This document shows positions 202 through 63,744 of a stretch of 64,000 nucleotides of DNA, piece by piece. This DNA comes from Macrostomum lignano. Its lineage: Eukaryota. The DNA is taken from positions 124,001-188,000 of the forward strand of contig NIVC01000905.1 of the NCBI GenBank assembly GCA_002269645.1, read 5' to 3'. Numbering within the stretch: the first letter of the stretch is position 1; the number at the start of each line of letters is the position of its first letter. The translations under genes were made by a program, and so were the position numbers. Below the pieces are notes generated by a model. That model made no database searches. It was not told where the DNA came from and saw nothing but the letters and a program-made list of their open reading frames with translations.

Positions 202-2164
202 TGGTCAGCTGGTCAGACAGACGCGTGATGACGTCATCAAAACTCGCCTTCTGCACAGCCACCCGCAGCTCATATTCCTGTCCAGACTGCAGGGAGCCGC
301 AGGTGGCAGACGGAGTGGCTGAAGACGCAGTCGAGACTTCACCTGAGCCGACTCGCTTGCAGGTGAGCTGGTACGAGACGCCAGAAGTGCTGGATGGCTG
401 CCAAGTCACAGAGATGGCGGTCTCATTGGAGCTGTGCTGAGCTGAGCTGGCGTCAATGCCGAACAGCTCTGCAAATTTCAATGCACGAGTTTGTTTAAAC
501 GCTGTGAAATAGACGAATGTACCTAAAAAGCTTGAGAGGTGATGCAATAGTTTTTTCTTTTTAAGTTCAGTTTACTAAAGAGTTTAACTACTGAAAGTAG
601 CTGCGAAAACTGTTTTACTGAGAGACCTACTGTTTTTATTCTGTGTTTACCAGTAAAACATCGGTCATTACCGAACTGCCTCTAATTATAGCATATTGGC
701 CGATAATCCTGTTTCCGATGGAAGTATAGGCAATGTTTAAAGCGTGAATTACCTGATGCGCATTTAACTTGTATACCCCGTCATTCATTTTAATAAATAA
801 TAACACCAAGTAAAGCTATATATCAACTTATTAAGTAATGTTTCTCTACAGCCTCAGCAAAAGCAAAATATCAGCGGAAGTTTAGCAGCTCAAAAACCTC
901 AAATTCAATACAAATAATCGTGCATACGCACGTATAGAAATATAGATGTAAAATCCTCATTGCAGAAGCCAAAGAACTCAATCACTATTGCTAAATCTAT
1001 CCATGTGACTTTTATTGTGCTTTGTGATGTAATTTGATGGCAATGCAAACGCGACCCACTGTTGCCACCGCTACTTTGCTTGCAAAGATTTCCAAAGCAA
1101 AGCATCTGAAGGAACTCACTGGTCAGCTGGTTGGACAGACGCGTGATGACGTCATCAAAGCCCGCCTTCTGCACAGCCACCCGCAGCTCATAGGCCTGTC
1201 CAGACTGCAGGGAGCCGCAGGTGCCAGACGGAGTTGATGAAGACGCATTCCAGACTTCACCTGAGCCGACTCGCTTGCAGGTGAGCTGGTACGAGACGCC
1301 AGAAGTGCTGGATGGCTGCCAAGTCACAGAGATGGCGGTCTCATTGGAGCTGTACTGAGCTGAGCTGGCGTCAATGCCGAACAGCTCTGCAATTGATGAG
1401 CATCTCTGATGATTTTGGTTCCTACGGATGGCGGCTAAACTTAATTAATTCATAAGTAATTAGCCATTTAAAAGCAGCCATACAGGTATTAGGAGTACGC
1501 TTAATCCTGCCACTTACAGACTTACACAGCAGCAGCTTCAAGATTTTACGTTTATTAAGCAGAAATTTATTGGAAATTTTCAGCACAGCTCGTGACTATT
1601 ACCGTACCTGTCTGCCTGTTCACTGAGCAAGTCTGTCTTTATTTTATTTTTTGGTGTGAATGGCTTATCCTAGCAATATCCAGAACAGCGATTTCAATTT
1701 CAATAGATACATGCAGCTGTTATATAGTGCATAAGTATTCACAACTACGAGTAAAGTTTATGGCACATACAGTAATGCGACAGAATCTTGATATCGGCTT
1801 TTTATAAATTAGTTTGATCCGCCTTGCTATTGTTTGGAATCAGCAATTAATGTACATCGATCTATTTGACAATCTCTTTATCGAAGTACATTCAAAATAT
1901 TTTCAGTTTGATAATGGAGCTCACTGGTCAAAGCTGTGCCGTAAATGTAAAACCCAGGCGGGAACCCAGTCTTGACGGCTCTCACTGTGACAGTGACAGA
2001 GGCTCCGGATGGCTGGCCTGTGCACACAGCGGTTGTGTCTGGCACTCTGCCAGCGCAGCTGACTTCATACTCAACTCCGACATCGGGAGAGGCCGCCCAC
2101 CGGGCTCTGAAGCTCGTCTCCGTCACATCCGAGATGTGCACTGGTCCTGGGATATTGTTGAGTA
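202..2164 (-). CDS. R0: orphan FN3 exons B-C-C of an FN3 receptor paralogue lacking exon A; continues off the left edge
   Basis: Exon B 2164-1925 (240 nt), C 1386-1120 (267 nt), C 468-202 (267 nt). All have YAG acceptors and A|GTGAG donors, phase 1-1, and are open. FN3 pattern (W..S...V.Y.L.C...L..G.EY.L.V.V). No leader exon upstream; only the intron that normally follows exon A survives at about 3000-3067. Confidence 0.75.
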
Positions 2165-5100: not shown

Positions 5101-5531
5101 GAAGCTCAGCGAGCCCCAGGCCACTGAGTAGTTGCGGATGACGCCGTTCGGCTCGCTGGGAGTCCGCCAGTCGCATAGCAACTGCGATGACGCATCGTCC
5201 AGCCTCACCGACTGCGGCTGCGACGGCGCGTCCTCCAGCGTTCGAACCTCCGACCTCTGGGGCAGCGAGGCCAGGCCCGACAGCTCGGCGACCGCCTCCA
5301 CCGAGTAGTTGGTGAACGGCCTCAGCGGCTGCAGAGCCACGGTGCACCTGCCGGAGTCCGGCCGGCAGCTGTTGGTAGCAGCAGCGAAGTCCCCACTGTC
5401 TGCGTGGGCGGCCGCAGTCAACCGCTCGGAGCCGGAGCTGGCAGTCAGCGACACCTCGACGGCGCGCTTGTCCGGCAGCAGCGACACAAAAGGGCTGCCG
5501 GGCGCTGCGGGACGGCGGCGGGGAAACCGGG

Positions 5532-5730
5532 CTCAGAACCAACACTCACTCAGAACCAACACTCACTCAGAACCAACACTCACTCAGAACCAACACTCAC
5601 TCAGAACCAACACTCACTCAGAACCAACACTCACTCAGAGCCAAGACTCACTCAGAACCAACACTCACTCAGAACCAACACTCACTCAGAACCAACACTC
5701 ACTCAGAACCAACACTCACTCAGAACAAAG
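5532..5730. repeat. 18-bp minisatellite (cagaaccaa[c/g]actcact), F-E intron of R1
   Basis: Direct tandem repeats; homologous arrays in R2 and R5. Confidence 0.95.
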
Positions 5731-6111
5731 ACTGAGCTGAACTCACGCATCTGCAGCTGCTCAGCGATGACGATCTCCGAGCTCTCCTGCCTCAGCCCGG
5801 ATTTGTTGGCCACGGCAGTCACCGCCACTGTCAGCTTCAGCGAGAGCAGCTCCGCCTCCGCCAGGCTCAGCAGCAGCCGCGTCGAGTTGAACGCAGCCTC
5901 CCTCAGCAAGTTGGGCTTCGAGACGCTGCTCACGCGGAACTGCAGCAGGTCGGCGCCATCGGCAGCGCTGGACGTCCAGTTGAGCAGCAGCACCGCCTCG
6001 GCGGGCTGCGACTCGCTCGGCTGCGACACCGCGGCCGCGGCTGAGGGTCGGCTGGCGGGGTCCGGGATGAGCAGCGGCCCTGGGGAGGGTGGGGAGATCG
6101 GGATTGAGATC

Positions 6112-6490
6112 GAGCTGAGTGACACTGTGAGCTGAGTGATACTGTGAGCTGAGTGACACTGTGAGCTGAGTGACACTGTGAGCTGAGTGACACTGTGAGC
6201 TGAGTGACACTGTGAGCTGAGTGACACTGTGAGCTGAGTGACACTGTGAGCTGAGTGACACTGTGAGCTGAGTGACACTGTGAGCTGAGTGACACTGTGA
6301 GCTGAGTGACACTGTGAGCTGAGTGACACTGTGAGCTGAGTGACACTGTGAGCTGAGTGACACTGTGAGCTGAGTGACACTGTGAGCTGAGTGACACTGT
6401 GAGCTGAGTGACACTGTGAGCTGAGTGACACTGTGAGCTGAGTGACACTGTGAGCTGAGTGACACTGTGAGCTGAGTAACACTGTGAGCT
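6112..6490. repeat. 17-bp minisatellite (gtgacactgtgagctga), intron upstream of exon F in R1
   Basis: Near-perfect tandem repeats. Confidence 0.95.
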
Positions 6491-16493: not shown

Positions 16494-19400
16494 CTAACGC
16501 CGGCCATTCACAGCAGGGATCTCCACATATTCAGCTGACTGAGCGGAGCCTCCAACCACAGTGGCGTAATCGTTTGGTGCACCGCTGACTCCGCTGCCTG
16601 CAGGGCTGTCAGAAGCTGGCTTGGCAGCTTTCTGTGGAGATCTGGAAGGGTTCAATGAAATGACAGCACCTGCTGTTAAATTAAGTTGAGCACTCTGTAA
16701 AATTCGGTTTGAGTTCGAGCCACCAGCACTAACCAATGGCTCTCAGACCAGGTGCTCAGTTTGTAGTTTGGGGACATCATTCAGCCAATGAAAGTTTGCA
16801 GCATAACACAGGCTCACACAGAGTGCACATCGGTCCTGACCACCTCACCATCAGGTACGTGCACACAAATTAACGGAATCGAAACCGGGACTCTCAGTTT
16901 CTCTGCACCTTCCCAGCTCAGCTGCTTTGAGCACAAAATTTAAGTCGCACCTGTTTTGCCGACGAATCCGAAGGAAGATCAGCGAAGCCGCAACGATAGC
17001 CAGAATGACCACCAGCGGCACCGCGACTGCCACCACGATGGTCGCTGCGCCACCGCCACCGTCTCCACCAGCAGTGACAAAGTTGAGCTCAGCTGAGTCC
17101 CCAGCTAAAGTCTGGCTGACCGGCGTCACCCTCACCGAGTACTCGGTGCCCGGCTGCAGCTGTCGCACTCTGACGGCGTACGCGTCTGAGCCGTTACCGC
17201 TGTTGTTGACGTACTGGGTGCTGGCGCACGTCCTGGACAGCAGGTCCAGAAGGCCTCCCGTGGTGCAGGAGAGCAACTGGCAGCCGGCGTTGGTGGAGTT
17301 CAGCACCAGCAGCTGCGAGCAGACATTGGAAGCCACTTTGAACACCTGCGGAATGTCATGAAATGCCTCGTACGAAATGAACCATTCAGTAGCCTCAATC
17401 AAAGTACTCATGATTCACACCTGCACAGCGAACGCCTGCAGCAGGCCGTTTGGCAGCCGAGGCTCCTCGAACTCCACCAGCGCCTCCGCCTCCGAGGGCG
17501 TCGCCCGCAGGCCGCCGACGGCGCCGCTGCGAGTCTCCGGGCTGCGGAAGGAGGCGGAGGCGACGGCGCCGGGCCCCGCGAGGTTCACCGGCCACAGCGA
17601 GGCGCCGTACTCGGTCCAGGGCAGCAGCGAGCGCGGGGAGGCGCCCTCGGAGCTGACGGCGACCTCCGCGGACAGCGAGGCGTCGCCGAACTCGAAGGCT
17701 CGCACGAGCACCGGCGCTGAGCAGTCGGCCGTCAGGGCCTCAAGCCGCTGCCGGGCCTCCTCAGACTGCAGCTGGAGGCGGTGGCGGCCGCAGTCGGAGC
17801 AGTTCAGCCGCCGGGCCGCCGCGCAGCCGCCCGGACCGTCCAGTCGCAGCTCGAACTCGAACACGACGCCCCGGCCGAGCTCGGGGCTGAGCGGCTTCCA
17901 GCTGAGGCGGACGGGACCGCCAGGGATTAGCAGAATCGTCAGGCCGGACACCGCAGGTGCAACGCTGTCCTCTGAATTCCGTGAAAGTACCAGCACATTC
18001 AGAGTTGATTTGAAAACAGGCTGTAACAAAAGTCAGTACAAACGCAATTCTCACTGGTCAGCTGGTTGGACAGAGCTGTGATGACGTCATCAAAGCCGCC
18101 CGCCTTCTGCACAGCCACCCGCAGCTCATATTCCTGTCCAGACTGCAGGGAGCCGCAGGTGGCAGACGGAGTCGATGAAGACGTAATCGAGACTTCTCCT
18201 GAGCCGACTCGCTTGCAGGTGAGCTGGTACGAGACGCCAGAAGTGCTGGATGGCTGCCAAGTCACAGAGATGGCGGTCTCATTGGAGCTGTACTGAGCTG
18301 AGCTGGCGTCAATGCTGAACAGCTCTGCAATGAAACGGACCCAATAGAAGCGAGCTGTGCCTCATCAGAGCAGCTGCAATCATTTGCTGAGCTCCAACTT
18401 ACTGGTCAGCTGGATTGGCAGCCAGGTGACAACTTCATCGAAGCCGCCCTGCTTAGTGACAGCCACACTCAGGTTGTAGGCCTCTCCTGACTGCAGATTG
18501 CTGAAGGTGGCACTCAGATACTTTGATGGAGGCAGAGATGTTGAATTCCCTGTGCTGACTCGCCTGCAGGTCATCCGGTACAGAACTCCTTCAGTGATGG
18601 ACGCCACCCAAGTCAGGGAGATGGAAGTCTCTGTGATGGTGAAACTCACTAAGCTGGCGTCAATCGGGAAGAGCTCTGCGGTTGCGAGGTGGGTGAGCAG
18701 CTCCTGACTTAAAAGTCCCGATTTTTTCGAGTTATAATCTGATACAGAGACTGCTAGCCGCCTTTAGTGAAATGGCTGTTTGGGTTTTTGCTGTGTGGTG
18801 GGGTGGTGAGTGCGTCGTCCACGCCGTGTGTCTATTTAGACCGCTACCTTTGTGGCTAATTGCGTTTGCTCAGGTTTAATTTTTTTTACTTCTAAATCAT
18901 GTCAAACACCTTCGTACTCATACTGCCTCCATCAAACAAAGCGCTTCGAGAAGCCCTTAGAGAGCGCGGCCTGCCTACTCATGGCAATAGGAAAGAGCTG
19001 AAAAGTCGCCTGAGTCGCATTGCCAAGGAGCTCGAGCAGGACAGAAGCTCATCCCGTCGTACTCAAGTGGACAAGACACCACCATCGAATGCTGGCACAC
19101 CCGATTTAATTAGTCTGGCTCCACCTGAGAGCGAGATGCAACTGGTAGCGGGCGCCTCGGCCGAATGTTGAGCGGCGACGGGAGGCAGAGTCGAGGAACA
19201 GCTGCAGAAGACTGAACTGCGTATTCGGCTGCTGGATCTCGATCTCGAGGCAGAACTCGCTGAAGCGAACCAATGTGGCGCGACGGCCGCGAAAGAATGA
19301 GTCTGACGAGATCAGACTCCCGGTGAGTGGCATGATTTGTATAACGAATGTATTTTGGGCAGACAGGGGCTGAAGCTTCGCATGCTCATGCGCCGGTGGT

Positions 19401-29650: not shown

Positions 29651-31717
29651 TCCGAGTCCCTTGGGATTGGCTCTCATGGGTATTACTTGCACTACAGAAT
29701 CCCGGCCACATTTTGAGAACGCAAACCTGAAATGATGTGGCTTGAAGTGGTGACTGACACGAAATATATCAGACTGCCTTCCTTAAAACATTTAATGAGA
29801 CATTGCCTTTCTGTTATGACTTTGTAAATCGACTTAGCATTTTAATCAATCTTGTGAATACACCCACAAGAGGTTTGAAAAGCTTTCAGATAGCTATCAG
29901 GTAGCTTTGTAGATAAATCTACTAAAAGAGCCTTCCAAACAAATCTACTTTTATGCAAACACAAGAAACGAAAAAAAACGCTGAAACCTTTTCATATTAG
30001 ACATAATCATAATTTAAATTGAAGATCGGTTATTAAATTTTTATTGAATAGTATAAAATTTGGAATCAATGACAAGAAGCAGTTTTAAGTCTGATTCATT
30101 TTTAAAATCAACCAACGAAGTCGAATAGACAATATTTTTGAAGTCTTGCAGTTGTGCTCCTCAACTGTCGCTCTTGCCTGTCTTCTTGCCGATGTAGCAG
30201 ACGTGCAAAAACAGAATTCTTCGATCAAATCTGAAAAAGTAAAAACGTAGGAGATTTCGAAATTTTGTTATTTACGAAATATCTCTGCATAAGGCAATTG
30301 AACAGCTTTTCATTGACCATACTCATAAATAGTGATTATCCCATTCAAAAATAAATTCACTCGGTTTTTTAATCTAGGGTTAAGCTCAAGGACTACTAAA
30401 GTCCAACGGTGCAAGGGTAACTTCTCAGTGATCCTGGGTTCAAATCTTCTCAAGGGTCTGTAAGGGTGATGATTACTAGCTTCTGAATGTGAGATTGAAG
30501 CGTTGAAGCGTTCTTGAACAAGAGATTCGAACTTGGGGTAGGCAGTAACTTTAAATCAATGTGTCATGCTGTTGAAACATTCGAATAGCATTATCGAGGA
30601 AGCTCTATGTATACTACTTTCTGGTTTTATCTTTAGTAGTATAAGCGACCTCCTACTGATATGAAAAACGGTAAAGTTATGTCATTATTCTTATTCCAAC
30701 TGCATACACTTTTTGAGCTGAAAATTTGAACTGCGCTTGCTGTAATTAAAAACTACCTATTTATTGTAGGTATGATTACATTAGAAGTAGCAATCGTTAC
30801 TTTGGAGAAGGGCTTTGAGCAATCGCACAAAATCGAAAGACCACAGAAGACACAGTCGTGCCCATTCACCTGAGCCACTACGCAGGCACACAATGACAGA
30901 GGAGTCACATCGGACCTGACTTTATAATCGTCCTAAACTGACCTGACGATTTTCATTTAAGATTCAATTCAGACTACTGAGAAAAGTAGACAAATAAAGA
31001 TTTGAGTTGTAAAATTCCTCACAAAGCCATTAAAGAACATCCTGCGGACACTAAGCTTGGCGGGAGAGAACCGTGTGTGGCTGTGGCGGACTGACGACAG
31101 ACATTTTAGCGTGTCACAGTCAAGAAGTACACAGAAACTAAGAGCATTCCTACAGCTCGCTCACCGAGACAGTCCGTGCAGACTTCTGGCCGGAAGAATG
31201 TCAGCATTGGGCGCCCATCTGCGGCACTCCTCTCGAGCTTTGGGAAGACTTCCCGGATAGATTTTCGTGTAGCACATCTGTAGGCTGGCACCAGGACCTC
31301 TGGAAATCGGCGACCAGGCGGCTGATGGACATCTGGTCCTGACGGTTTTCTCTTGAGCAGCATCAGCTGCATCATTCTTAGCTGTCTCCGGCTGCTGGAC
31401 TCGCATCGGCGCCTTGCAAAAGTGAAAATGTCGCGCCTCAGGCTGGTAGGTGCGCCACAGCAGACGGGTCTCGGCGTCGACCAGCAAGCCGAAGTTCATG
31501 GGCGGGCGGCTGGGACCGACAAGCCAGCTTCTGCAGTGCCGGCAGGAATGGAAATCACGCTTTAGTCAATCGTGAAGCATTCACATGTAAGGCGTATGAC
31601 CCAACTATGACAAAAGAGAGTGTTTGAATTCATGTCACACGGATTTGGGTTTCGGCCGGAAGGGATGGGGCTGCCTCACAATCCCACTTCAGGGAAATGG
31701 GGCCTATGGTTCTGGCG

Positions 31718-32448
31718 CCCCTGGTGCTAAAGCCCCTGGTGCTAAAGCCCCTGGTGCTAAAGCCCCTGGTGCTAAAGCCCCTGGTGCTAAAGCCCCTGGT
31801 GCTAAAGCCCCTGGTGCTAAAGCCCCTGGTGCTAAAGCCCCTGGTGCTAAAGCCCCTGGTGCTAAAGCCCCTGGTGCTAAAGCCCCTGGTGCTAAAGCCC
31901 CTGGTGCTAAAGCCCCTGGTGCTAAAGCCCCTGGTGCTAAAGCCCCTGGTGCTAAAGCCCCTGGTGCTAAAGCCCCTGGTGCTAAAGCCCCTGGTGCTAA
32001 AGCCCCTGGTGCTAAAGCCCCTGGTGCTAAAGCCCCTGGTGCTAAAGCCCCTGGTGCTAAAGCCCCTGGTGCTAAAGCCCCTGGTGCTAAAGCCCCTGGT
32101 GCTAAAGCCCCTGGTGCTAAAGCCCCTGGTGCTAAAGCCCCTGGTGCTAAAGCCCCTGGTGCTAAAGCCCCTGGTGCTAAAGCCCCTGGTGCTAAAGCCC
32201 CTGGTGCTAAAGCCCCTGGTGCTAAAGCCCCTGGTGCTAAAGCCCCTGGTGCTAAAGCCCCTGGTGCTAAAGCCCCTGGTGCTAAAGCCCCTGGTGCTAA
32301 AGCCCCTGGTGCTAAAGCCCCTGGTGCTAAAGCCCCTGGTGCTAAAGCCCCTGGTGCTAAAGCCCCTGGTGCTAAAGCCCCTGGTGCTAAAGCCCCTGGT
32401 GCTAAAGCCCCTGGTGCTAAAGCCCCTGGTGCTAAAGCCCCTGGTGCT
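31718..32448. repeat. Perfect 15-bp minisatellite (cccctggtgctaaag) x48
   Basis: No variant unit seen across 720 bp. Confidence 0.97.
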
Positions 32449-49332: not shown

Positions 49333-49593
49333 ATGTCGAGCATCAAAGGAGAAGCAACAGAAGACTATATTGGCAACAAAACTGATCGATGCCTGTCTGA
49401 CACGGCAATTAAAACTGTGTCAGGCCTTGGTATCGGCATCCTATGCTCTGTGCTGTTCCTTCGTCGCAGACCCTGGCCTGCGGTCCTTGGCACCGGAATT
49501 GGCCTAGGCATGGGCGTCGCTAATTGCGACAACGATTTCAAGACTCCGCATTCGCTGGTGTCGCAACAGATTCGAGTGGCGCAGCGTCAATGA
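49333..49593 (+). CDS. MICOS10: MICOS complex subunit Mic10 (MINOS1 family), single coding exon
   Basis: 86 aa: EDYIGNKTDRCLSDTAIK, SGLGIGILCSVLFL, RRR loop, WPAVLGTGIGLGMGVANC..DF. This matches the Mic10 pattern (D..G.KWDRCL.D, two Gly-rich TMs, basic loop, WP...G.G.G.GM...NC). A branch point and acceptor (ctaat..ctcctcag) lie 3 nt before the ATG. Confidence 0.9.
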   Translation: MSSIKGEATEDYIGNKTDRCLSDTAIKTVSGLGIGILCSVLFLRRRPWPAVLGTGIGLGMGVANCDNDFKTPHSLVSQQIRVAQRQ

Positions 49594-51181: not shown

Positions 51182-54100
51182 ATGTCTTCTGGCATGTCAG
51201 CTGGAATTCCACGACTCTTTCACTGCAGTTGCTGCTGCTGGCTGCTTCTGGTTGCAGCTGCAGCTGCTCTGCTGCTGTGCGATGAGGCGGCTGCTCAAGG
51301 CACGTCGTGTGGAAAACTGGTGCCGGGTCAGGTGGATCCTGTGACAGTGGCTGAAGTTCGCTCTTCTACATCTTCATCAATAACAGTTGATTGGCTGCCA
51401 CCAGACCGTGGCATCACAGGGTACTTTTACATAGTAAACTGCCCCAGCTGTCCCAGTCGGCAGCACAACACTACAGATGAGACATTCACATTTCGAGGTC
51501 TCACAGCGGCTACTGAGTACAGCTTCTCCATCCAGGCAGGACTTCGGAACTGCAGACTCAGCCCTGCATTCCATCTTTCTGGAAGGACAGGTGAGAATGA
51601 AAACTGTGCGGGTCATTCAGTACAAAATGCACGCAGCCTCGGGTGCGCCATTGGCTGCCACACCTGGCCACCTGGATTTCTAAAGAAATTCATAGCATTT
51701 CTTCTCACTAACTAATCTGAATTTGATTATTTGATGAGCTTTTTTGCTACTTCAAATTTATTAATTACAAATTTAATGCTGCTTAAATACCAAACCTTAA
51801 AGTTTCGCGAAATCTCACAACATCAGTTGAGCAATTCCCAACACAATTGCAGAACTCAGCAATATCCCAGGACCAGTGCACATCTCGGATGTGACGGAAA
51901 CGAGCTTCAGAGCCCGGTGGGCGGCCTCTCCCGATGTCGGAGTTGAGTATAAAGTCAGCTGCGCTGGCACAGTGCCAGACACAACCGCTGTGTGCACAGG
52001 CCAGCCATCCGGAGCCTCTGTCACTGTCACAGTGAGACCCGTCAAGACTGGGTTTCCGCCTCAGTCTTACATTTACGGCACAGCTTTGACCAGTGAGTTC
52101 CATTACCATATTGGAGATATTTTTGCTCTATTGCAATACTGTTAAGTTTTATTGAGGTATTTTGCCAACTCTGATAATTTGAACTGTGAGCTGAGATTTA
52201 GCCTGACTATAACGTTAAATTCATATCGTGTTGTAGTGACAGCAGCAGAAGCAATCAACTAGACTGATTTGCATTGATACAAATATCGCTTCACAGTATT
52301 GACCTCTGCTTAATGGCTTGTCATTAACTGGAAGTTCTGTTTCTACCATAGACAATTCCATTAATAAAGCTTATGTGCCGTTAGAATAAGAAGAAGAAGT
52401 ATATGATAATAGCCATTTAATAAGCATTCTATGGTCAGAATGTCCGAGGCTGCATTTAATGGTCTCGACAGGGACAACTAAAAGGGTTTTAGTTGTCCCT
52501 GGGTCTCGAGGCGAGCGAAGCAAGCCGAGGACCATTGAGTGGGGCCAAGGACATTGAGACCATAGACAGCTTAATTTAATGGCTATTATTTTATTTGAAA
52601 TCAGATTGCTTATTTTTGTGATATTCCCTCTGGTCGACCGTGGTTGCGGGCGGGGGTGCGAGGGCAGAGCCCGTTTGAAGACCCTTAAATGATTTATTGG
52701 TCCCGGTATAGAAGTGTTTGTACCATAGACTATTGATTCATTGCTGCGAAGGCGCCCATTAAAGGTCAATTAGATAAGCAATCGGATTTTATATTCTTTT
52801 CTTGCCTGGAATGCGAGAAATTCTTGCATTTAGAAGAAAAAAATCTGCGAGTTTCTCGCGAGATTTTCTTGGCAAGATTTTCTTGCGCGTTTTTAAGAAA
52901 TTTTTTCTCATGGAGATATTTTTGCGAGAGAAATTCATCTCGGTGATTTGAATAAAAGTATAAATCTTTCACAGAATAGGAAAAAACTTAGTTGTTGGCC
53001 AGCACCTTATTTCGAAGCTTTAACTTGTCTAAGCTAGCGACTTTCTGGTCAATGTCTTTAGCCCTGTGCACATCGCATTAATGGCTTCCAACTTTTATCG
53101 TTTTACAACCTGCGCGCTGCTCTTGGTCAACATAACCGCATTTTTGTCAGGACGTCAATGATGCAGTCTGCATCCTCTTTGTGCACCTGCGTGTCTTGCC
53201 CTTCCATTTGCGCATCTTCTTGCATTTCTTCCTTTGCTAGACGTGGAAGCCGGGTTCTGTACGCAGTCTTATTTCTGTCTCTCGAGATTCCACCCAGCCC
53301 GGCCCAGGAAAGACAGCTTTCAAGCTCTAAGTCTAAACTTTTCGGCTCTTTTTGCCATAGACGAAAATCGTAATTTTTATTAAATCCCTACGTTGGTGTT
53401 TTCCGGTAGGTAATTTTACCACAGACATAAAACACAGAGTCAGATTTTTTTAATTTTGCGGGTTGTATTTTATGTAATGTATTCTCGACAACAAAACAAA
53501 CCTCTGAGGGCCCGCATTGTCAACAACAATTTAAGTTTTTTTCCAGTCACACCATAAGGGTCACGATGTAGCGTACTTAAAATCAATTGTTAATAGCGAC
53601 GGAGCAGTTATTGAAGTTAAAATTGAGCTGACGCCCACCGCGGCCGTCGGCGAAGTCTTTTCCGCCTCGTGTAGTATTTTGGAGTCCAGAGCAGCCGATG
53701 AGTTGGCGATCTGAATGTCCGAGGTCCGATTGTACCTGTCCGTTCGGCACAGTTTGCTATTCCTTTACACCAGATTGATAGAGATGAGTAGCGCACGTCG
53801 CTAGTAGACTGTGAAAATCAAATCAAATTGTGTTTAAGCTGAGGAGCTGCTACATAAAGGAAGTATGAATCGAGCAGTGTTCTTCTTGATAAAACTTGTC
53901 CGTGGTTAAGAATGTGGGGCTTTGCCCACACCCCAATATTTCTATTTTAAACTCTTCAAGTCTGTGGCGAATTTTCAGGCTGTAAGTACTCGAGGTCTGG
54001 ACACTTTAAAGACAACGCAGTTGCGTGCAGTTATATAAAGTTTAAAATAAAGTTTTTGTTGACTGACAGACAGACTTGTTGATTGACAGACTTGCTTAGT

Positions 54101-57100
54101 GAACAGACAGAGTCAGGTACGGTATTAGTCACGAGCTGTTCTGGATTTCCCCAATAAGTTGCTGCCTAATAAATCAATAAACTAAGCGCCGTCTGCAATC
54201 TTGGAGCTGCTGCTTGACTGTGTAAGTGGCAAGATTTAGTTTGCTCTCAATACCTGTAGATTTGCTTATGAATTGCTAATTACTTATAAATCAATTTTAC
54301 CGCCCTCACTAGAAACCAAACTCCTTAGAGATGCTCATCAATTGCAGAGCTGTTCGGCATTGACGCCAGCTCAGCTCAGTACAGCTCCAATGAGACCGCC
54401 ATCTCTGTGACTTGGCAGCCATCCAGCACTTCTGGCGTCTCGTACCAGCTCACCTGCAAGCGGGTCGGCTCAGATGACAAAGTCTCGACTGCGTCTTCAT
54501 CCAGTGCGTCTGCCACCTGCGGCTCCCTGCAGTCTGGACAGGAATATGAGCTGCGGGTGGCTGTGCAGAAGGCGGGCGGCTTTGATGACGTCATCACGCC
54601 TCTGTCCAATCAACTGACCAGTGAGTTCCCTGGTGCTTTGCTTTGGAAATATTTGCAAATAGCGGTGGCAACAGTTGAGGCAGTTGAGATAACAAATCAC
54701 AATACAAGCCGTGTGCATTGATTTGGCAGAAGGGATTGAGGGTTTTGGCTTGTGCAATCAAGATTTTATATCGCTAATCAAGGACCACTAGCAGTTACCG
54801 TAGTATCAGGAAGCAACACTCGTACTCGTAAATATTGCAAAATTATTGGGAAGGCCAGTGTGTTTGCATTGCTTTCGACAGCTTTTATTTGAAATTTTGT
54901 TGTCTTCAGGTCGGATGACGCAAAGTTTCCAAATACGCAATATTTCTTGCAGACAAAAATAATGAAGTTGTGAGTCAGTTTATCTTGTCTTGACAAAGTT
55001 TCATATCAGAATAGCCTGTAGTTGAGAAGCTTTGAAAAGTAAATAATCTGTAGTGTTGAATTGGCTGCTTCAGAAGTTTATATATGCTTCTCGCTATCAA
55101 AGAATCGCAATTATAAAATCGGTGAGGTAATCATGGACTACTCAAGTAGAGAGACGAGAAAGTTTATTTATTGGAATTTTTAGAAGACAGGCTATGAATA
55201 TCAATAGAGCTGTATGAAAGGCAAGTCATGAAAAGATAAACATTAGGTCTGCCTCTTTTTAGATACAGTAACAGTTTTTGTGCTGAATAAATGAAAACCC
55301 CTATTCTTCCTAATGTCTTTTTTCGGTAGAACTCGCCCCCTAAATTACAAAGAAACGCAGTTTCCTGTCTTTCTACTTGAGCAGTGAGCCTAGTCAAAAA
55401 ATCCCTAAATCTGGATCGGAGATATGGCACAACTAAAATACGAATTGATAATTAATATGTAATGAGAATGATTATAAGATTCAAATTATTTACTCAAATT
55501 CTCAGTTGCTGACATCTATTTAAACAAAATTTTGTAAACAAGCTGTCCATCTTTCTTAGAAATTAATAGTATGATTAATTAAGTATGAATATTTTAAGTT
55601 GTCAATGATAACCTTTTTTGTCTATAAGTATGACTAAATTTATGCAGGGTAATTCTTGATTTCACTTTAAAATGTCGGGTGTGTCATAAGCAAAGTTATG
55701 TCACTGCATGCTTCTGTCCAAAGTACATGTAGACATGTGTAAATGCACTTGTGGGTAGTCCAGCAGTACCAGTGCATTTTGTTTATAGCCCACAATCTTT
55801 CGCAAGAATCAGTTAAGCAGCTTCAGTATCGCTCTATTTATAAGCTTGGATACTCTGCAGCAGAAGTAGAGGAGGATCTCGGGACCCACACTGCTGGACA
55901 ACTGCTTGACTTGCAGGACAATTTACAGGTGCTTTCAAGACTGTCTGATCCTTAGGGGTTCGAATTCGGAGATGCCACGAGATTTGGCCGGCCAGTGTTC
56001 AACCAGGACAACAAAAAGTCATCCATGTCATCAGCGATCTGGTCTGGAAAGATCCGCGACAGTCTGTCAGGAAGATAGCTTTAGTTGTCTAAAATACCAA
56101 TTTTACACCAATTTTACAGCTGGGTGAACTGAAGCAATGCAGAGTTAAGTGTCTCTTGCTTGTGGACACAAATTTTTCCGTGAAATCGGGAATCGAACCT
56201 CCGACTTTCAAGTCGTGAGTCCGATGCTCGAACCACTAGGCTACAAACTAGCATATGTCGCACAGGGATTATTAGGATACTCCAAACATTAAGCGAGTCT
56301 TCAAATAATTTTGAAATATTTACTAGCGTTAGGTCCTGATACAACGGTAACTTTAATAGTGGTCCTTGCTTAGACAGTGCGGTAATGACCAACTGTTTTA
56401 CCAGCAAACACATAATTTCAATAATTAATATGCCTCTAAGTTAGGCAGTATAAAAAATTTACTACTACTTCTAGCTACTTTAAGTAGTTTCACTATTGCG
56501 TCATTGCTCAGTTTTTTCAGGTAAATTTATCAAATTTACAGATTTTATTCTACAGATATCCATTAAAACTTGCAGAGCTCTCTGGCATTGACGCCAGCTC
56601 AGCTCAGTACAGCTCCAATGAGACCGCCATCTCTGTGACTTGGCAGCCATCCAGCACTTCTGGCGTCTCGTACCAGCTCACCTGCCAGCGGGTCGGCTCA
56701 GGTGAAGTCTCGACTGCGTCTTCACCCACTCCGTCTGGCACCTGCGGCTCCCTGCAGTCTGGACAGGAATATGAGCTGCGGGTGGCTGTGCAGAAGGCGG
56801 GCTTTGATGACGTCATCACGTCTTTATCCAACCAGCTGACCAGTGAGTGCTCAGCTGCTGCGGTGCCACAGTTTTACCTGCATGAATCTTGTATCTAGCA
56901 TCTAGCATGTATATAGCATAATCATTGATGCAGTTCAATACTTGAGGGCTAGACCGGCTCTGTGGCAAACTCGTCTGACTTTCACGCCAAAGGCTGCACA
57001 CTGTCGAAACTTCACCACATATATGGAAAAGTGTTACTGGGTTCTTTTTTTCCCTATCTTATACACTCCATCGGTATTATCCTCCTTATTGCTTATACAT

Positions 57101-60100
57101 TCATAAGCAGCCACCTTTCAAGCTGGGAGTACGCCCGCAGAAGAAGACATATCTTTAGAAGGATTGTTAAAAAGTCCATAAATATTAAAACTTCATTGCA
57201 GCATATTAAACTGCAATATGAAGGTTTTAATATTTATACAAAATAGACATAATAGGGCCTAACTTCTAAGGTACGATCTCTTTTCGTGTTAAAGCTTTTG
57301 TTTTAAATGATAAAAAATTTAATTGGCGCTAAAATAATGTTAAAATACCGTCTTAGAAACAGTTTCATAGCTTTGAAAATTTCTTCGTACAATATCAATT
57401 GGCCTATGAAACTTGGAGTGAATCAGTGAATTTGATTAGTCACTTGTCCCTAACAAAAATAACAATAACAAAAGTTTATTCGCTCCCTACAACAACTGTG
57501 AAATTGCGTGCATTCTAGCATAGAAATAAGATATTAGTTTTTCGATTTTGATCACAACATGTTATATAGATAACACAAAAGCAATAGAAAAACGACTGGG
57601 GAAAAAGCCTTCCATCAAGATGCTGAAAAATGTTGAGGATCTTCACTATCAAGAATAAAAAAATCAAGCAAACTAATCATTTTGAATAGACAGTATAAGA
57701 GTCTGTCATGGTCTGAACCACGCATAATATAATGTAATTAGACAGCTAAATGTCTGTAGGTTAATGCCGTGTGCCCTTTTCCTGCCTTTATAATCGCAGC
57801 ATTGTGTCAATCACTACATCCAGTTTCTCGGATTTCATAATTTAAGATTTACAATTTTCTTCTATTTGCTCAGTGCTCATTGGTTGGGAAAATCGTCACG
57901 TGACTGACACCTGACCAATGGGTTCAAAGCATGCCAGAGCAGCCGAGCTCAATTAACCTGGAGCTCCGTGCACGAAAATTAAGCCTGAAGTTTGTTGTGC
58001 AATTTTTGCCCATTAGGGTCCAAGCCCTCCCAAGGCCCAGAGTGTGCAGTGAGAAAGTTGGGGCTGTAAACCCTGTGTGAGTGAGCTTGCTCAGGGCTCA
58101 GCGGAGCTGGCATGACTGTTCAGGGCTCAGCGGAGCTGGCATGACTGTTCAGGGCTCAGCGGAGCTGGCATGACTGCTCAGGGCTCAGCGGAGCTGGCAT
58201 GACTGCTCAGGGCTCAGCGGAGCTGGCATGACTGCTCAGGGCTCAGCGGAGCTGGCATGACTGCTCAGGGCTCAGCGGAGCTGGCATGACTGCTCAGGGC
58301 TCAGCGGAGCTGGTATGACTGCTCAGGGCTCAGCGGAGCTGGCATGACTGCTCAGGGCTCAGCGGAGCTGGCATGACTGCTCAGGGCTCAGCGGAGCTGG
58401 CATGACTGCTCAGGGCTCAGCGGAGCTGGCATGACTGCTCAGGGCTCAGCGGAGCTGGCATGACTGCTCAGGGCTCAGCGGAGCTGGCATGACTGCTCAG
58501 GGCTCAGCGGAGCTGGCATGACTGCTCAGGGCTCAGCGGAGCTGGCATGACTGCTCAGGGCTCAGCGGAGCTGGCATGACTGCTCAGGGCGAGCGCCCAG
58601 TGCCCGGCCTGTGAACTCACTGACACTATTTGTAGACACAAAATGCTCACTCATTTTGAGCTGCATCTATATTTCTGCGTGCTCAAAAGCAACTGATATT
58701 TAGGGTAAGAAATTTAGCAGACAGGAATGTCTGTATCAGATGATAATTTGACAGTAATTGGGACTTTAAAGTCAGGAGCTGCTCACCCACCTCGCTACCG
58801 CAGAGCTCTTCCCAATTGACGCCAGCTCAGTGAGTTTCACCATCACAGAGACTTCCATCTCCCTGACTTGGGCGGCGTCCATCACTGAAGGAGTTCTGTA
58901 CCGGGTGACCTGCAGGCGAGTCAGCACAGAGAATTCAACATCTCTGCCTCCATCAAAGTATCTGAGTGCCAGCATCAGCAATGTGCAGTCAGGAGAGGCC
59001 TATAACCTGAGTGTGGCTGTGACTAAGCAGGGCGGCTTCCATGAAGTTGTCACCTGGCTGCCAATCCAGCTGACCAGTGAGTTGGAGCTCAGCAAATGAT
59101 TGCAGCTGCTCTGATGAGGCACAACTCGCTTCTATTGGGTCCATTTCATTGCAGATCTCTCTGGCATTGACGCCAGCTCAGCTCAGTACAGCTCCAATGA
59201 GACCGCCATCTCTGTGACTTGGCAGCCATCCAGCACTTCTGGTGTCTCGTACCAGCTCACCTGCAAGCGAGTCGGCTCAGGTGAAGTCTCGACTGCGTCT
59301 TCATCCACTCCGTCTGCCACCTGCGGCTCCCTGCAGTCTGGACAGGCCTATGAGCTGCGGGTGGCTGTGCAGAAGGCGGGCGGCTTTGGTGACGTCATCA
59401 CGCATCTGTCCAACCAGCTGACCAGTGAGTGCTGCTTTTGTCACAGCTTTTATATTATCGTATTCTTAAATCAACAATTTTTGAATATGTGCTTCATCTA
59501 GTGTTCGCATCTCACATGTGCGTTGAAGCTTTGACTGCAACTTGATGATGCTATATCTTTTTATTGATTGCTTTATCAAATTTCGCATGTATCCATAATT
59601 TTAGCTCGCCTTATCTGACAAATCGTTTTGAATTTTTTAGACATCTCTATGGCACGGACCCTTTGAAGTTCCCTAGCCATTTAAGCACTCAAAACCAAGT
59701 ATTGAGTAGTATTGTAACACGATATATATTTCTCGTGCATTAAATGACTCCAGCCAATACGCGATCACGAGCCAGTTAAGCACGATTTTAGCGTTTAATG
59801 CACGGTTTTACACATTTATATCGTGTTACAATTAGCAAGATACGAGCGTAGATTGTAATCAATTTTAAGTTTTTTCTAGACGATCGCAAGACCCTGTTCA
59901 TGTGCTTGGGTCCGAAGGTGGCTTAATTAGTTTATCGACTTAAAACTTGACTTAAATATTTTAAAACAGAACCTATTTTATTCAATTACTTTCTATACTC
60001 TGAAGAAATGGTTAAAGCCTATATTTTGATTCAATACTTCCTGGTATGCAAAGCAAACTTCTATTTGTCCTCATGGCTTGACCCTTAGGATGAGAAAGTC

Positions 60101-63100
60101 AGGGCGGCTGTGAACCCGGTGTGAGCGTCTGGGTCTGGGTACATGTCTCGTCGCCTCCTCGCTCTTGCTTGCTTGCGTCTTCTTGCAACTAAAAGAACTC
60201 GCACCTCACCAATTCCTCGCACCGCAGGAATTCCTCGCACGCACCGCACCTCGAATCTCTCCGTTAAGTCTGTGGCATCTCAGAATCTCTCCGTTAAGTC
60301 TGTGGCATCTCAGCATGTCTCCATTGAGTCTGTGGCATCTCAACATGTCTCCATTGAGTCTGTGGCATCTCAGCATCTGTCCATTGAGTCTGTGGCATCT
60401 CAGCATGTGTCCATTGAGTCTGTGGCATCTCAGCATCTCTCCATTGAGTCTATGGCATCTCAGCATGTGTCTATTGAGTCTCTGGCATCTCAGCATGTGT
60501 CCATTGAGTCTATGGCTTCTCAGCATCTCTCCATTGAGTCTCTGGCATCTCAGCATGTGCCCATTGAGTCTCTGGCATCTCAGCATGTGTCCATTGAGTC
60601 TCTGGCATCTCAGCATCTGTCCATTGAATCTGTGATTTGACAAAATACAAAAATAAAAGATAGTTTTGCATATTGCTGTGATTAGTACGGCACTGTAACA
60701 GGTGCCCACTGTTGCCTTTTTGTGTTTTGTTTTTTTCTCATAAACCAGAATTATGTTATAAGTGCAGTAGTCCAGTCACACTGGCTTCAGTAAGAATTAG
60801 CTAACAACTATAATCAGAGTGCTCATGTATCAGTATGTACTGGCCTGTACAATCTTGAAAATCTGGAATATTCCAGTTTTTCAGAGATTTTTCTTGTATT
60901 TTTTCTGTCTAATAACTAAAACAAAGTTAGCAACGTAGGAAGCACAATAAAAGTTTGATAGCTGGCAGTGTCACTCAGCTCACAGTGTCACTTAGCTCAC
61001 GGTGTCACTCAGCTCACCGTGTCACTCAGCTCACAGTGTCACTCAGCTCACAGTGTCACTCAGCTCACAGTGTCACTTAGCTCACAGTGTCACTCAGCTC
61101 ACGGTGTCACTCAGCTCACAGTGTCACTCAGCTCACCGTGTCACTCCGCTGACAGTGTCACTTAGCTCACGGTGTCACTCAGCTCACCGTGTCACTCAGC
61201 TCACAGTGTCACTCAGCTCACAGTGTCACTCAGCTCACAGTGTCACTCAGCTCACGGTGTCACTCAGCTCACAGTGTTACTCAGCTCACAGTGTCACTCA
61301 GCTCACAGTGTCACTCAGCTCACAGTGTCACTCAGTCAGCTTACAGTGTCACTCAGCTCACAGTGTCACTCAGCTCACAGTGTCACTCAGCTCACAGTGT
61401 CACTCAGCTCACAGTGTCACTCAGCTCACAGTGTCACTCCGCTCACAGTGTCACTCAGCTCACAGTGTCACTCAGCTTACAGTGACACTCAGCTCACAGT
61501 ATCACTCAGCTCACGGTGTCACTCAGCTCACAGTGTCACTCAGCTCACAGTGTCACTCAGCTCACATTGTCACTCAGCTCACAGTGTCACTCAGCTCACA
61601 GTGTCACTCAGCTCACAGTGTCACTCAGCTCACAGTGTCACTCAGCTCACAGTGTCACTCAGCTTACAATGACACTCAGCTCACAGTGTCACTCAGCTTA
61701 CAGTGACACTCAGCTCACAGTGTCACTCAGCTCACAGTGTCACTCAGCTTACAGTGTCACTCAGCTCACAGTGTCACTCAGCTTACACTGACACTCAGCT
61801 TACAGTGTCACTCAGCTCAATCTCAATCCCCATCTCCCCGCCCTCCCCAGGGCCGCTGCTCATCGCGGACCCCGCCAGCCGACCCTCAGCCGCTGCCGCG
61901 GAGTCGCAGCCGAGCGAGTCGCAGCCCGCCGAGGCGGTGCTGCTGCTCAACTGGACGTCCAGCGCTGCCGAGGGCGCCGACCTGCTGCGGTTCCGCGTGA
62001 GCAGCGCCTCGAAGCCCGACTTGCTGAGGGAGGCTGCGTTCAACTCGACGCGGCTGCTGCTGAGCCTGGCGGAGGCGGAGCTGCTCTCGCTGAAGCTGAC
62101 GGTGGCGGTGACTGCCGTGGCGAACAAATCCGGGCTGAGGCAGGAGGGCTCGGAGATCGTCATCGCTGAGCAGCTGCAGATGCGTGAGTTCAGCTCAGTC
62201 TTTGTTGTGAGTGGGTCTTGGTTCTGAGTGAGTGTTGGTTCTGAGTGAGTGTTGGTTCTGAGTGAGTCTTGGCTCTGAGTGAGTGTTGGTTCTGAGTGAG
62301 TGTTGGTTCTGAGTGAGTGTTGGTTCTGAGTGAGTCTTGGTTCTGAGTGAGTCTTGGTTCTGAGGAAGTGGTGGTTCTGAGTGAGTGTTGGTTCTGAGTG
62401 AGTGTTGGTTCTGAGTGAGTCTTGGTTCTGAGTGAGTCTTGGTTCTGAGTGAGTGTTGGTTCTGAGTGAGTCTTGGTTCTGAGTGAGTGTTGGTTCTGAG
62501 GGAGTGGTGGTTCTGAGTGAGTGTTGGTTCTGAGTGAGTCTTGGTTCTGTGCCCCGTTTCCCCGCCGCCGTCCCGCAGCGCCCGGCCGCCCTTCGGTGTC
62601 GCTGCTGCCGGACAGGCGCGCCGTCGAGGTGTCGCTGACTGCCAGCTCCGGCTCCGAACTGCTGACGGCGGCCGCCCACGCAGACAGCGGGAGCTTCGCT
62701 GCTGCTACCAACAGCTGCCGCCCGGACTCCGGGAGGTGCACCGTGGCTCTGCAGCCGCTGAGGCCGTTCACCAACTACTCGGTGGAGGCGGTCGCCGAGC
62801 TGTCGGGCCTGGCCTCGCTGCCCCAGAGGTCGGAGGTTCGAACGCTGGAGGACGCGCCGTCGCAGCCGCAGTCGGTGAGGCTGGACGATGCGTCATCGCA
62901 GTTGCTATGCGACTGGCGGGCTCCCAGCGAGCCGAACGGCGTCATCCGCAACTACTCGGTGGCCTGGGGCTCGCTGAGCTTCCCGGACGGCGCTGAGATT
63001 CGCGTCGGAGCCAAGGAGGCGGCGGCCGACACGACCCGCCTGCCGCTTGAGCCGCCGCCGCTGCCGGGCCACGTCGGCTTCTGCCGCGTCGGCGCCTGCA

Positions 63101-63702
63101 CGGGCGGCGGCTGCAGCCGCGGCAGCGACAGGGCAGAGCGGCGGCTGCCCGACGGCGAGGCGCCCGCGGTGTCCGGCGGCCTGCAGCCGCTGGCGGTCCC
63201 TGGCGGTCCCGTCCGCCTCAGCTGGAAGCCGCTCAGCCCCGAGCTCGGCCGGGGCGTCGTGTTCGAGTTCGAGCTGCGACTGGACGGTCCGGGCGGTTGC
63301 GCGGCGGCCCGGCGGCTGAACTGCTCCGACTGCGGCCGCCACCGCCTCCAGCTGCAGTCTGAGGAGGCCCGGCAGCGGCTAGAAGCCCTGACGGCCGACT
63401 GCTCAGCGCCGGTGCTCGTGCGGACCTTCAAGTTTGGCGACGCCTCGCTGTCCGCGGAGATCGCCGTCAGCTCCGAGGGCGCCTCGCCGAGCTCGCTGCT
63501 GCCCTGGACCGAGTACGGCGCCTCGCTGTGGCCGGTGAACCTCGCGGGGCCCGGCGCCGCCGCCTCCGCCTCCTTCCGCAGCCCGGAGACTCGCAGCGGC
63601 GCCGTCGGCGGTCTGCGGGCGACGCCATCGGAGGCGGAGGCGCTGGTGGAGTTCGAGGAGCCGCGGCTGCCAAACGGCCTGCTGCAGGCGTTCGCTGTGC
63701 AG
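51182..63702 (+). CDS. R5: inverted, longest FN3 receptor paralogue (A-B-C-C-D-C-F-E), continues beyond the right edge
   Basis: Exons 51182-51590, 51853-52092, 54348-54620, 56576-56842, 58804-59076, 59155-59424, 61851-62183, 62579-63702. Canonical splice sites, consistent phases, open frames, and clear similarity to the R1-R4 exons. Confidence 0.85.
54779..56368. mobile_element. 1.6-kb non-autonomous DNA transposon in the R5 C1-C2 intron
   Basis: About 33-bp imperfect TIRs caaggaccacta..agttaccgt.gtatcagga at both ends. No TSD recognised. Confidence 0.65.
56095..56252 (-). mobile_element. tRNA-derived SINE
   Basis: Minus strand: A box TAGCCTAGTGGT, B box GGTTCGATTCC, then a SINE-core-like GTGTCCACAAGCAAGAGACACTTAACTCTGCATTGCTT and CACCCAGCTGTAAA. 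Confidence 0.7.
58090..58590. repeat. 29-bp minisatellite (gggctcagcggagctggcatgactgctca), R5 C2-D intron
   Basis: Near-perfect tandem repeats. Confidence 0.95.
59713..59830. repeat. 118-bp inverted-repeat element (MITE-like)
   Basis: tgtaacacgatat..cgtgcattaaa / tttaatgcacg..atatcgtgttaca arms. Confidence 0.55.
60250..60635. repeat. 30-bp minisatellite (tctgtggcatctcagcatgtctccattgag), R5 C3-F intron
   Basis: Tandem repeats. Confidence 0.93.
60967..61820. repeat. 17-bp minisatellite upstream of exon F in R5
   Basis: Reverse complement of the R1/R2 unit (cagtgtcactcagctca). Confidence 0.95.
62215..62550. repeat. 18-bp minisatellite, F-E intron of R5
   Basis: ttggttctgagtgagt[g/c]t units. 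Confidence 0.95.
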
Positions 63703-63744
63703 GTGAGGCCGCCTGCGACTGGGAGCTCCATTGCGAGGCATGAG

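Follow-up and report, generated by a model that had tools for sequence, protein, structure and literature searches.

FN3 receptor paralogues beside a probable R3-subtype receptor tyrosine phosphatase gene in the flatworm Macrostomum lignano

Introduction

Receptor tyrosine phosphatases of the R3 subtype (PTPRB, PTPRJ/DEP-1, PTPRH, PTPRO and PTPRQ; Drosophila Ptp10D/Ptp4E/Ptp52F; C. elegans DEP-1) have an ectodomain made of FN3 domains only, most of which are encoded by single exons between phase-1 introns, and a larger, Cys-bearing juxtamembrane FN3 domain (PMC5336234). A single ancestral R3 gene was inferred for the protostomes sampled, with flatworms unmentioned (PMC5336234). Here we describe a cluster of six FN3 receptor gene units, named R1 to R6, in a 64,000-nt stretch of the Macrostomum lignano genome (NIVC01000905.1:124001-188000, assembly Mlig_3_7), hereafter the window; coordinates are window positions unless another locus is named. 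We consider it likely that the window holds the 5' two-thirds of an R3-subtype phosphatase gene (unit R6) together with older tandem paralogues derived from the same template, of which R2-R5 lack a phosphatase. To keep the two uses of one symbol apart, we write R3-subtype or R3-type for the phosphatases and unit R3 for the gene copy.

Phosphatase-receptor ectodomains that lack the catalytic domain are familiar from phosphacan, which comes from PTPRZ, and from truncated forms of PTPRO; they can be soluble or competing, and a single gene yields them through alternative splicing or alternative promoters. The loci Hydractinia Alr and Botryllus fuhc encode type I membrane proteins that are clustered and restricted to their lineages, with repeated beta-sandwich domains and short tails; extreme allelic polymorphism and a fusion/rejection phenotype define them. 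M. lignano is solitary and does not fuse.

Results

We searched the window by tblastn with eight module peptides and recovered 37 module copies, which fall into six gene units (Table 1). The modules are labelled SP+A (signal peptide and A), B, C1/C2/C3, D, F0, F1, F2/TM (with the transmembrane segment, TM), tail and CTLD (C-type lectin-like domain). R6 lies on the plus strand, head-to-head with a minus-strand series that runs R5-R4-R3-R2-R1. An earlier, sequence-only reading had placed six paralogous units at 202-63702 and described them as a tandem birth-and-death cluster built from symmetric exons; both end coordinates coincide exactly with exon ends, the six units were recovered by tblastn, and intact, decayed and chimeric members are all present. 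The symmetry likewise held up in lengths, splice sites and translation: exons B (240 nt), C (267-273 nt), D (273 nt) and F0 (333 nt) are all of phase 1-1 with lengths that are multiples of three, and share the borders ttgcag/AG (acceptor) and CCA/gtgagt (donor). The Pfam fn3 threshold was passed by A, C, D and the last F domain, while B scored weakly.

The R6 reading frame stays open for ~1062 aa, and the window ends inside its F1-F2 intron. From the upstream Mic10/DUF543 gene to the end of R6 (42626-64000), the window is collinear, at 89-95% identity, with positions 1108-22616 of a second locus, L001, on contig NIVC01000551.1. The Mic10 gene serves as the syntenic marker and has a 98.8% match at L001 7964-8221. 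Non-coding substitution divergence between R6 and L001 is 2-16%, and the order in L001 is Mic10, A, B, C, C, D, C, F0, F1, F2/TM and protein tyrosine phosphatase (PTP) exons. Given its collinearity with L001, whose gene runs on into F2/TM and PTP exons, R6 almost certainly represents the 5' portion of an R3-type phosphatase gene whose predicted TM and PTP exons lie just past the window.

The L001 gene is annotated as BOX15_Mlig029524g2, whose 1238-aa product (P0003) reads A-B-F0-F1-F2-TM followed by one Y_phosphatase domain (E=9.5e-69) that contains HCSAGVGRTG. Of the single-domain PDB chains, PTPRB, PTPRJ and PTPRH scored highest against P0003, and the named relatives of P0003 outside the species are PTPRH-like and PTPRJ. 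The R5-type protein P0004 has PTPRH as its best FN3 match outside Macrostomum. A search with P0004 returned 40 matches at E<=0.001 among 1.84 billion representative proteins; among ten of these that were looked up, the seven closest with an organism name were from M. lignano, as are all close protein relatives. P0003 joins B straight to F0 and omits four intact phase-1 C/D exons (L001 10555-20541). Since this transcript-based model skips four intact exons, in-frame skipping of C/D is an annotated isoform of the parent gene, and C/D may represent a block of cassette exons; the proposal that symmetric phase-1 exons permit modules to be lost in frame is thereby borne out. The WPD loop of P0003 reads WEDHAVP rather than WPDHGVP, so that the acid Asp is retained and Pro is replaced by Glu.

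We compared the family with the features that define R3-subtype receptors. The ectodomain consists of FN3 domains alone in R2-R4, R6 and P0003 (Pfam fn3 and Dep-1 Fn3 matches), while R5 adds a CTLD, and the FN3 exons B, C, D and F0 lie between phase-1 introns. Judged by its own features, the last FN3 domain of R2-R4 and P0003 is enlarged (~135 aa), with 4 Cys and an internal phase-0 intron. P0003, encoded by the collinear paralogue of R6, has one phosphatase domain. A tblastn search with the cytoplasmic part of P0003 found no PTP-like sequence in the window, so that R2, R3, R4 and R5 have no PTP domain there, and the products of R4 and R5 end at stop codons. Read directly, the C-terminus of P0003 (...DPVYVRATSATT...NEA) contains no YxN tyrosine motif. 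As far as their sequences can be tested, R6 and P0003 fit the R3 definition, and R2-R5 are best called R3-derived paralogues. The sequence-only reading had instead set the cluster apart from PTPRQ-type genes and had given R6 the common TM and tail. The architecture of P0003, the collinearity of R6, the PTPRH and PTPRJ relatives, the exon phases and the long juxtamembrane FN3 domain all speak against the former claim, in that the cluster derives from, and still contains, a member of the PTPRB/J/H/O/Q family; as for the latter, synteny predicts a different TM exon and a phosphatase domain.

The remaining units can be described by reference to one template, A-B-C1-C2-D-C3-F0-F1-F2/TM-PTP. Flanking intron sequence identifies C1, C2 and C3 as positional orthologues across R1, R4, R6 and L001. 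Relative to the template, R2 and unit R3 lack C1 through C3 and join B to F0; R4 joins the C3 donor to the middle of F1; and R5 lacks C1 and C2, joining B to D, and has all that follows C3 swapped for CTLD exons. This amounts to three rearrangements between phase-1 introns (B>F0; C3>mid-F1; B>D with C3>CTLD), along with loss of the phosphatase exons. Several distinct architectures are thus present, as first proposed, although the TM and tail that one of them (A-B-C-C-D-C-F-E) includes are not in the sequence of R6. The chimeric junctions are real as well (C3>F1' in R4, at 17971; C3>CTLD in R5, at 33043). The term combinatorial is too strong, given that module order is constant and the architectures are one template minus deletions and fusions. 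P0001 (UniRef A0A1I8HKT5, from an older assembly) reads C-C-D-C-C-(frameshifted C)-C-D; its sequence suggests another subgenome copy with a longer or differently arranged C/D array and hints at blocks that differ in architecture.

Table 1. Gene units, exons and other features of the window (window positions)
Feature	Position	Strand	Architecture, basis or remark
R1	202..2164, continuing beyond the left window end	-	5'-truncated; B-C1-C2, then off window; tblastn module map
R1 exons	B 1925-2164, C1 1120-1386, C2 202-468	-	
R2	7528>3442	-	A-B-F0-F1-F2/TM-tail; tblastn module map, translation
R2 exons	SP+A 7126-7528, B 6614-6853, F0 5747-6079, F1 4382-5504, F2/TM 3912-4306, tail 3442-3589	-	
R3	14850>8870	-	A-B-F0-F1-F2/TM-tail; tblastn module map, translation
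R3 exons	SP+A 14428-14850, B 13918-14157, F0 12137-12469, F1 10280-11403, F2/TM 9810-10204, tail 8870-9017	-	
R4 (BOX15_Mlig007331g1)	25660>16494	-	A-B-C1-C2-D-C3-(5'-truncated F1)-F2/TM-tail; tblastn module map, model identical to PAA75074.1
R4 exons	SP+A 25255-25660, B 24796-25035, C1 24289-24558, C2 22374-22643, D 18403-18675, C3 18055-18324, 5'-truncated F1 17421-17971, F2/TM 16951-17345, tail 16494-16641	-	
R5 (BOX15_Mlig011792g2)	35888>30161	-	A-B-D-C3-CTLD; tblastn module map, model identical to PAA75075.1
R5 exons	SP+A 35492-35888, B 35020-35259, D 33766-34038, C3 33418-33687, CTLD part a 32704-33043, CTLD part b + second half-CTLD 31165-31530, last exon 30161-30230	-	
R6, probable 5' part of R3-type receptor tyrosine phosphatase gene	51182..63702, continuing beyond the right window end	+	A-B-C1-C2-D-C3-F0-F1, then off window; tblastn module map, splice sites, translation
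R6 exons	SP+A 51182-51590, B 51853-52092, C1 54348-54620, C2 56576-56842, D 58804-59076, C3 59155-59424, F0 61851-62183, F1 62579-63702	+	
R4 chimeric junction	17972..18054	-	83-nt intron; C3 donor to new phase-1 acceptor ttcag/AG
75-nt phase-0 intron	R4 17346..17420, R3 10205-10279, R2 4307-4381	-	inside long juxtamembrane FN3
Tail exon	R4 16494-16641, R3 8870-9017, R2 3442-3589	-	encodes SPQK...NDYATVVGGSAQSAEYVEIPAVNGRR
15-nt minisatellite	31717..32448		48.8 copies, 100% matches; in intron splitting R5 CTLD
17-nt minisatellites flanking F0, R6	60966-61819 and 62204-62549		intronic
17-nt minisatellites flanking F0, R3	12501-13410 and 11431-12111		intronic
17-nt minisatellites flanking F0, R2	6112-6508 and 5532-5726		intronic
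Mic10/DUF543 gene upstream of R6	49333..49593	+	Pfam PF04418, E=3.9e-21

The exons of all copies are ~95% identical to one another, and the introns flanking A, B, C1 and C2 diverge by 20-45% between window paralogues. Exon dS between these paralogues is 0.03-0.10, similar to the non-coding divergence of R6 from L001. Since paralogue introns are far more diverged than those of R6 and L001, the duplications are much older than the genome duplication, with homogenisation of the exons since then. F0/F1 are 94-97% identical among R2, R3, R4, R6 and L001, and F1 alone is 95-97% identical between R2-R4 and the phosphatase genes. Merely 75 nt past F1, the F2/TM exon of R2-R4 is 48% (amino acid) and 72-80% (nucleotide) identical to that of L001. 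The F0/F1 exons (61851-63702; 10280-12469; 4382-6079) have a GC content of 0.71-0.74 and third-codon-position GC (GC3) of 0.91-0.93, compared with GC3 of 0.47-0.70 in the other exons and a GC content of ~0.4 in introns; this striking GC-rich island within one gene coincides with the most homogenised segment. From this pattern we infer that GC-biased gene conversion probably keeps the exons alike, most strongly in F0/F1.

Two different 17-nt minisatellites bracket F0 in every window copy and may promote unequal exchange. As 3 x 17 = 51, such arrays produce long spurious open reading frames (ORFs) in all frames. We rejected those found here ('SLSSQCHSAHSVTQLTV', 'NQHSLRTNTHSEPTLTQ') as coding sequence, because 17 is not divisible by 3 and the transcript-based B>F0 junction falls within unique sequence; the F0 acceptor was set from this P0003 junction. 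Related 21- and 23-nt minisatellites (TCTGAATGTCATTC...) were seen at 8184-8489 and 15618-16134, downstream of the tail exons of unit R3 and R4 and before the next gene start.

We next consider the ratio of nonsynonymous to synonymous substitution (dN/dS). For modules A-D, R6 versus L001 gave 0.90 (bootstrap 0.53-1.63), which is compatible with neutrality, relaxed constraint or a mix of these, and gene conversion confounds a test for diversifying selection. The corresponding value for F1 was 0.11, and F1 of R2 and unit R3 compared with the phosphatase genes gave 0.24-0.48. In the C modules it is mainly the predicted BC, C'E and FG loops that vary; these loops are also structurally the least constrained, and their variability therefore leaves selection versus drift unsettled.

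R4 is an intact predicted type I membrane protein of 940 aa that lacks a phosphatase and carries 11 N-glycosylation sequons. Our spliced models of R4 and of R5 (651 aa) are residue-identical to the annotated products PAA75074.1 and PAA75075.1. The M. lignano annotation was built from RNA-seq with StringTie/TACO (PMC5730564); as the models match it exactly, both exon chains are transcript-guided, and this guidance therefore extends to the unusual R4 junction, the 75-nt intron and the tail exon, which is part of the annotated R4 product. At the junction, the new acceptor sits at an FN3 domain boundary within F1, so that F0 and the first 573 nt of F1 are missing; F1 homology begins at 17969 and homology to the C3 flank stops at 18004. 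An in-frame stop in the F region of R4 was rejected as a pseudogene lesion because it lies inside the 75-nt intron, which contains a stop codon in R4 and is open in R2 and unit R3. In R6 and L001 the same phase-0 intron is several kb long and contains a 20-nt minisatellite (63744-64000). The C2-D intron of R4 (18.7-22.4 kb) contains an ORF with a SAP domain (Pfam E=2.9e-07) at 18899-19171 (+) and further ORFs; at ~1.7 kb longer than that of R6, this intron may hold an inserted mobile element.

Past the TM segment R4 has 55 residues, consisting of RIRRQNR and a 48-residue exon with the motifs NDYATV and AEYVEI. The sequence-only reading was right that a TM segment and a tyrosine-motif tail are common to R2-R4: both motifs are invariant in the three copies, with at least 10 other tail positions varying. 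The tail does not match the immunoreceptor tyrosine-based inhibitory motif (ITIM; [ILVS]xYxx[ILV]), position -2 being N or A. Nor does it match the canonical activation motif (ITAM; Yxx[LI]x6-8Yxx[LI]), in that V closes the first motif and 9 residues form the spacer. The tail thus appears ITAM-like at best. The TM segment of R4 (AATIVVAVAVPLVVILAIVAASLIFL) has no charged residue for an adaptor. The R4-type junction and tail recur in P0037, a 393-aa relative from an independent model. A homologue search with F2/TM/tail of R4 came back empty; we did not accept this as evidence of absence, because the collection holds both the R4 protein and P0037, and P0003 aligns with the query pairwise at E=1e-24.

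R5 encodes four FN3 domains and a C-type lectin-like domain, and has an AATAAA 116 nt downstream of its stop. It is predicted to be secreted, because it has a signal peptide and no TM segment. The fold of the lectin-like end, as called from the letters alone, is supported by profile and fold searches: all 31 PDB profile matches (best E=1.5e-4) are CTLDs, and so are the 50 top fold matches listed for an AlphaFold model of moderate confidence (predicted local distance difference test, pLDDT, 64), at template-modelling scores of ~0.3. Pfam Lectin_C, however, had no match to this domain at E<=0.01, and the domain is split over two exons around a minisatellite. The Ca2+/sugar-binding motifs EPN/QPD and WND are absent on direct reading, the stretch being WLVGPSRPP...LWRTY; it is therefore a lectin-like domain that probably does not bind sugar. 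M. lignano multi-CTLD proteins are the closest relatives of the R5 CTLD and hence the likely donors of its exons.

The neighbourhood of R5 is repeated elsewhere in the genome. On the L001 contig the phosphatase gene faces an R5-like gene (Mlig011792g1) in head-to-head orientation, with the SP+A exon of an R4-like gene coming after the latter, and a third R5-like copy on contig 1416 (L002) has the same 15-nt array; R5-like genes are thus annotated in all three paralogous blocks. Between the CTLDs of R5 and L002, dN/dS is 0.11. M. lignano is a neopolyploid with three subgenomes reported (PMC10733133), and three R5-like blocks fit this number.

Signs of pseudogenisation, also proposed from the sequence, were found in three units. 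Unit R3 carries a frameshift from a 17-nt tandem duplication in its signal-peptide region (~14763-14782) and is probably a pseudogene. R2 has a single frameshift, a 1-nt deletion (C4>C3) in F1 at 4844-4846, which is possibly an assembly error because it falls in a homopolymer. R1 is 5'-truncated, with no signal/A exon between R1 and the R2 tail. The RNA-seq-guided annotation calls no gene over unit R3, nor over the part of R2 viewed. The last intron of unit R3 holds a partial duplicate of the TM exon (GAATIVVAVVVPLVVILVVAAALLIFLRIRRQN..., ~9259-9460).

In the AT-rich spacer between R5 and Mic10, two inverted ORF copies, 41951-42334 (+; ...GQPPKLGWPCDLG...) and 45958-46299 (-; ...AQSPKFGWPCNL...), have no Pfam match and are probably a repeat element. 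An Rfam scan of the window returned no RNA family. Our literature searches, which took in supplements of M. lignano papers, returned no paper on this gene family and no occurrence of the gene ids searched; for C-type lectins in Macrostomum they returned adhesion papers only. Genes of the family are deposited solely as hypothetical proteins.

Discussion

The cluster is real and fast-rearranging, and we think it probable that it grew from one R3-type phosphatase gene. In this scenario, the paralogues would have arisen from a single template as the phosphatase exons were lost and phase-1 introns underwent three rearrangements, gene conversion would hold their exons alike, and R6 would continue into a phosphatase domain past the window. 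R4 would sit at the membrane with the ectodomain modules of the phosphatase, where it could compete for, or share, its extracellular partners; it would signal, if at all, via the 55-aa tail, whose NDYATV and AEYVEI tyrosines could dock SH2 proteins once phosphorylated. R5 would be a secreted, soluble form that adds a C-type lectin-like domain of the non-sugar type. The distal, N-glycosylated FN3 modules would form a fast-evolving outer part, with the membrane-proximal F1 and the CTLD constrained.

Several observations weigh against parts of this account. The phosphatase exons of R6 lie off the window, so that this part is predicted from synteny. Gene conversion is deduced from divergence patterns rather than from a formal tract test, and a dN/dS of ~0.9 in A-D can be read as relaxed constraint no less than as diversifying selection. 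As for the tail, its exon diverges by 7-10% compared with 9-12% for the flanking intron, the dN/dS of the exon is 0.5-0.9, two of the three tail-bearing copies are frameshifted, and no AATAAA or ATTAAA occurs within 400 nt past the exon.

One alternative would explain the extra copies as debris of duplication in a neopolyploid genome rich in repeats, with R4 and R5 transcribed and functionless. R1, R2 and unit R3 are broken, unit R3 and the viewed part of R2 are unannotated, dN/dS is high in A-D and in the tail, and redundancy and tandem repeats are known features of this genome (PMC5730564; PMC10733133). We nevertheless find this unlikely. Low dN/dS in the CTLD between paralogous copies, and a 940-codon frame with all splice sites that R4 retains despite the 20-45% intron divergence from its paralogues, make pure by-product status of R4 and R5 less likely; in addition, the R4-type junction and tail recur in the independent P0037, and R5-like genes are annotated in all three blocks. 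The same redundant, partly chimeric assembly (PMC5730564; PMC10733133), together with the homopolymer frameshift in R2, might raise the suspicion that mis-merged haplotypes or subgenome copies account for the array. This is exceedingly improbable, and we rejected it: the copies differ by 4-45% with distinct architectures and flanks, the gene order recurs on a second contig, and an older assembly gave a model spanning R5 and R4 (P0002).

Two further proposals concern recognition. The sequence-only reading favoured an independent immune or allorecognition family, formed by free exon shuffling and not of phosphatase type. A tandem cluster of symmetric exons with several architectures and pseudogenes, nearly confined to M. 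lignano, would suit such a family. In contrast, an R3-type phosphatase gene is both the source and a member of the cluster, module order is fixed, the exons are homogenised rather than diversified, and no immune-type motif is matched; we regard the proposal as very unlikely. Alternatively, the R6 phosphatase and an R4-type Tyr-tail paralogue might form paired receptors that oppose each other at the same, possibly polymorphic, ligand in the manner of KIR, LILR and SIRP, one dephosphorylating and the other recruiting kinases or SH2 adaptors, in recognition of non-self, partner or pathogen. The abrupt fall in identity from F1 to F2/TM between R2-R4 and the phosphatase gene, an invariant YxxV-x9-YxxI in three tails, distal modules with dN/dS near 0.9 and changes concentrated in predicted loops, and a cluster that has pseudogenes and is kept in at least 2 paralogous blocks are consistent with this idea. 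Against it stand a motif that is neither a canonical ITAM nor an ITIM, a TM segment without charge, a tail that is under no clear purifying selection, and the survival of one intact copy among the three that bear it, and we consider such pairing quite unlikely. The fuller version, a phosphatase-based system in which the phosphatase and a paralogue with an ITAM-like tail have conversion-matched ectodomains and are joined by a secreted FN3-lectin-like relative, is decidedly improbable. More generally, an immune or allorecognition role would be argued from analogy, and none of the immune-receptor features that could be tested was found. If the paired system were true, it would constitute a flatworm recognition module for partner, self or microbe, convergent with vertebrate KIR/SIRP-type pairs but made from FN3 domains and with a catalytic inhibitory arm.

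Descent from an R3-type phosphatase gene thus remains our preferred explanation. The ligands of R3 ectodomains are mostly unknown, and the locus shows one R3 gene spawning a local family in which one member trades the catalytic domain for a tyrosine-motif tail and another for a secreted lectin-like end, with apparent exon-limited gene conversion and very high GC3 marking the most conserved exons. As a descriptive genomic finding, it illustrates in-frame remodelling via phase-1 FN3 exons. In a transgenic flatworm amenable to RNA interference, it also opens a direct route to learning what is recognised by an R3 ectodomain and whether phosphatase signalling is tuned by paralogues that lack catalysis.

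Taken together, the family is closest to the R3 phosphatases, with which it shares the FN3-only ectodomain, single-exon FN3 domains between phase-1 introns, the enlarged, Cys-bearing, intron-split juxtamembrane FN3, one TM segment and, in P0003, one PTP domain. It differs in that four or five of the six units lack a phosphatase, a 55-aa Tyr-motif tail closes one unit and a C-type lectin-like domain another, the genes are arrayed in tandem and show exon homogenisation, and P0003 has WED for WPD and no C-terminal YxN. In contrast to phosphacan and truncated PTPRO, each non-catalytic form here is a gene in its own right, with a promoter and terminal exons of its own. R5 shares its lectin-like end with M. 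lignano multi-CTLD proteins such as BOX15_Mlig021682g1, whose six repeats match the R5 CTLD (E=8.8e-159 for the whole protein), but these proteins lack the A-B-D-C FN3 head. The cluster resembles Hydractinia Alr and Botryllus fuhc in clustering, lineage restriction, beta-sandwich repeats and short tails. KIR, LILR and SIRP clusters likewise show tandem birth-and-death with pseudogenes and evidence of gene conversion, and near-identical ectodomains on different TM and cytoplasmic parts; their domains, however, are of the Ig type rather than FN3, the inhibitory partner here would be a phosphatase instead of an ITIM receptor, and the tails and TM segment described above have no ITIM, canonical ITAM or charged residue.

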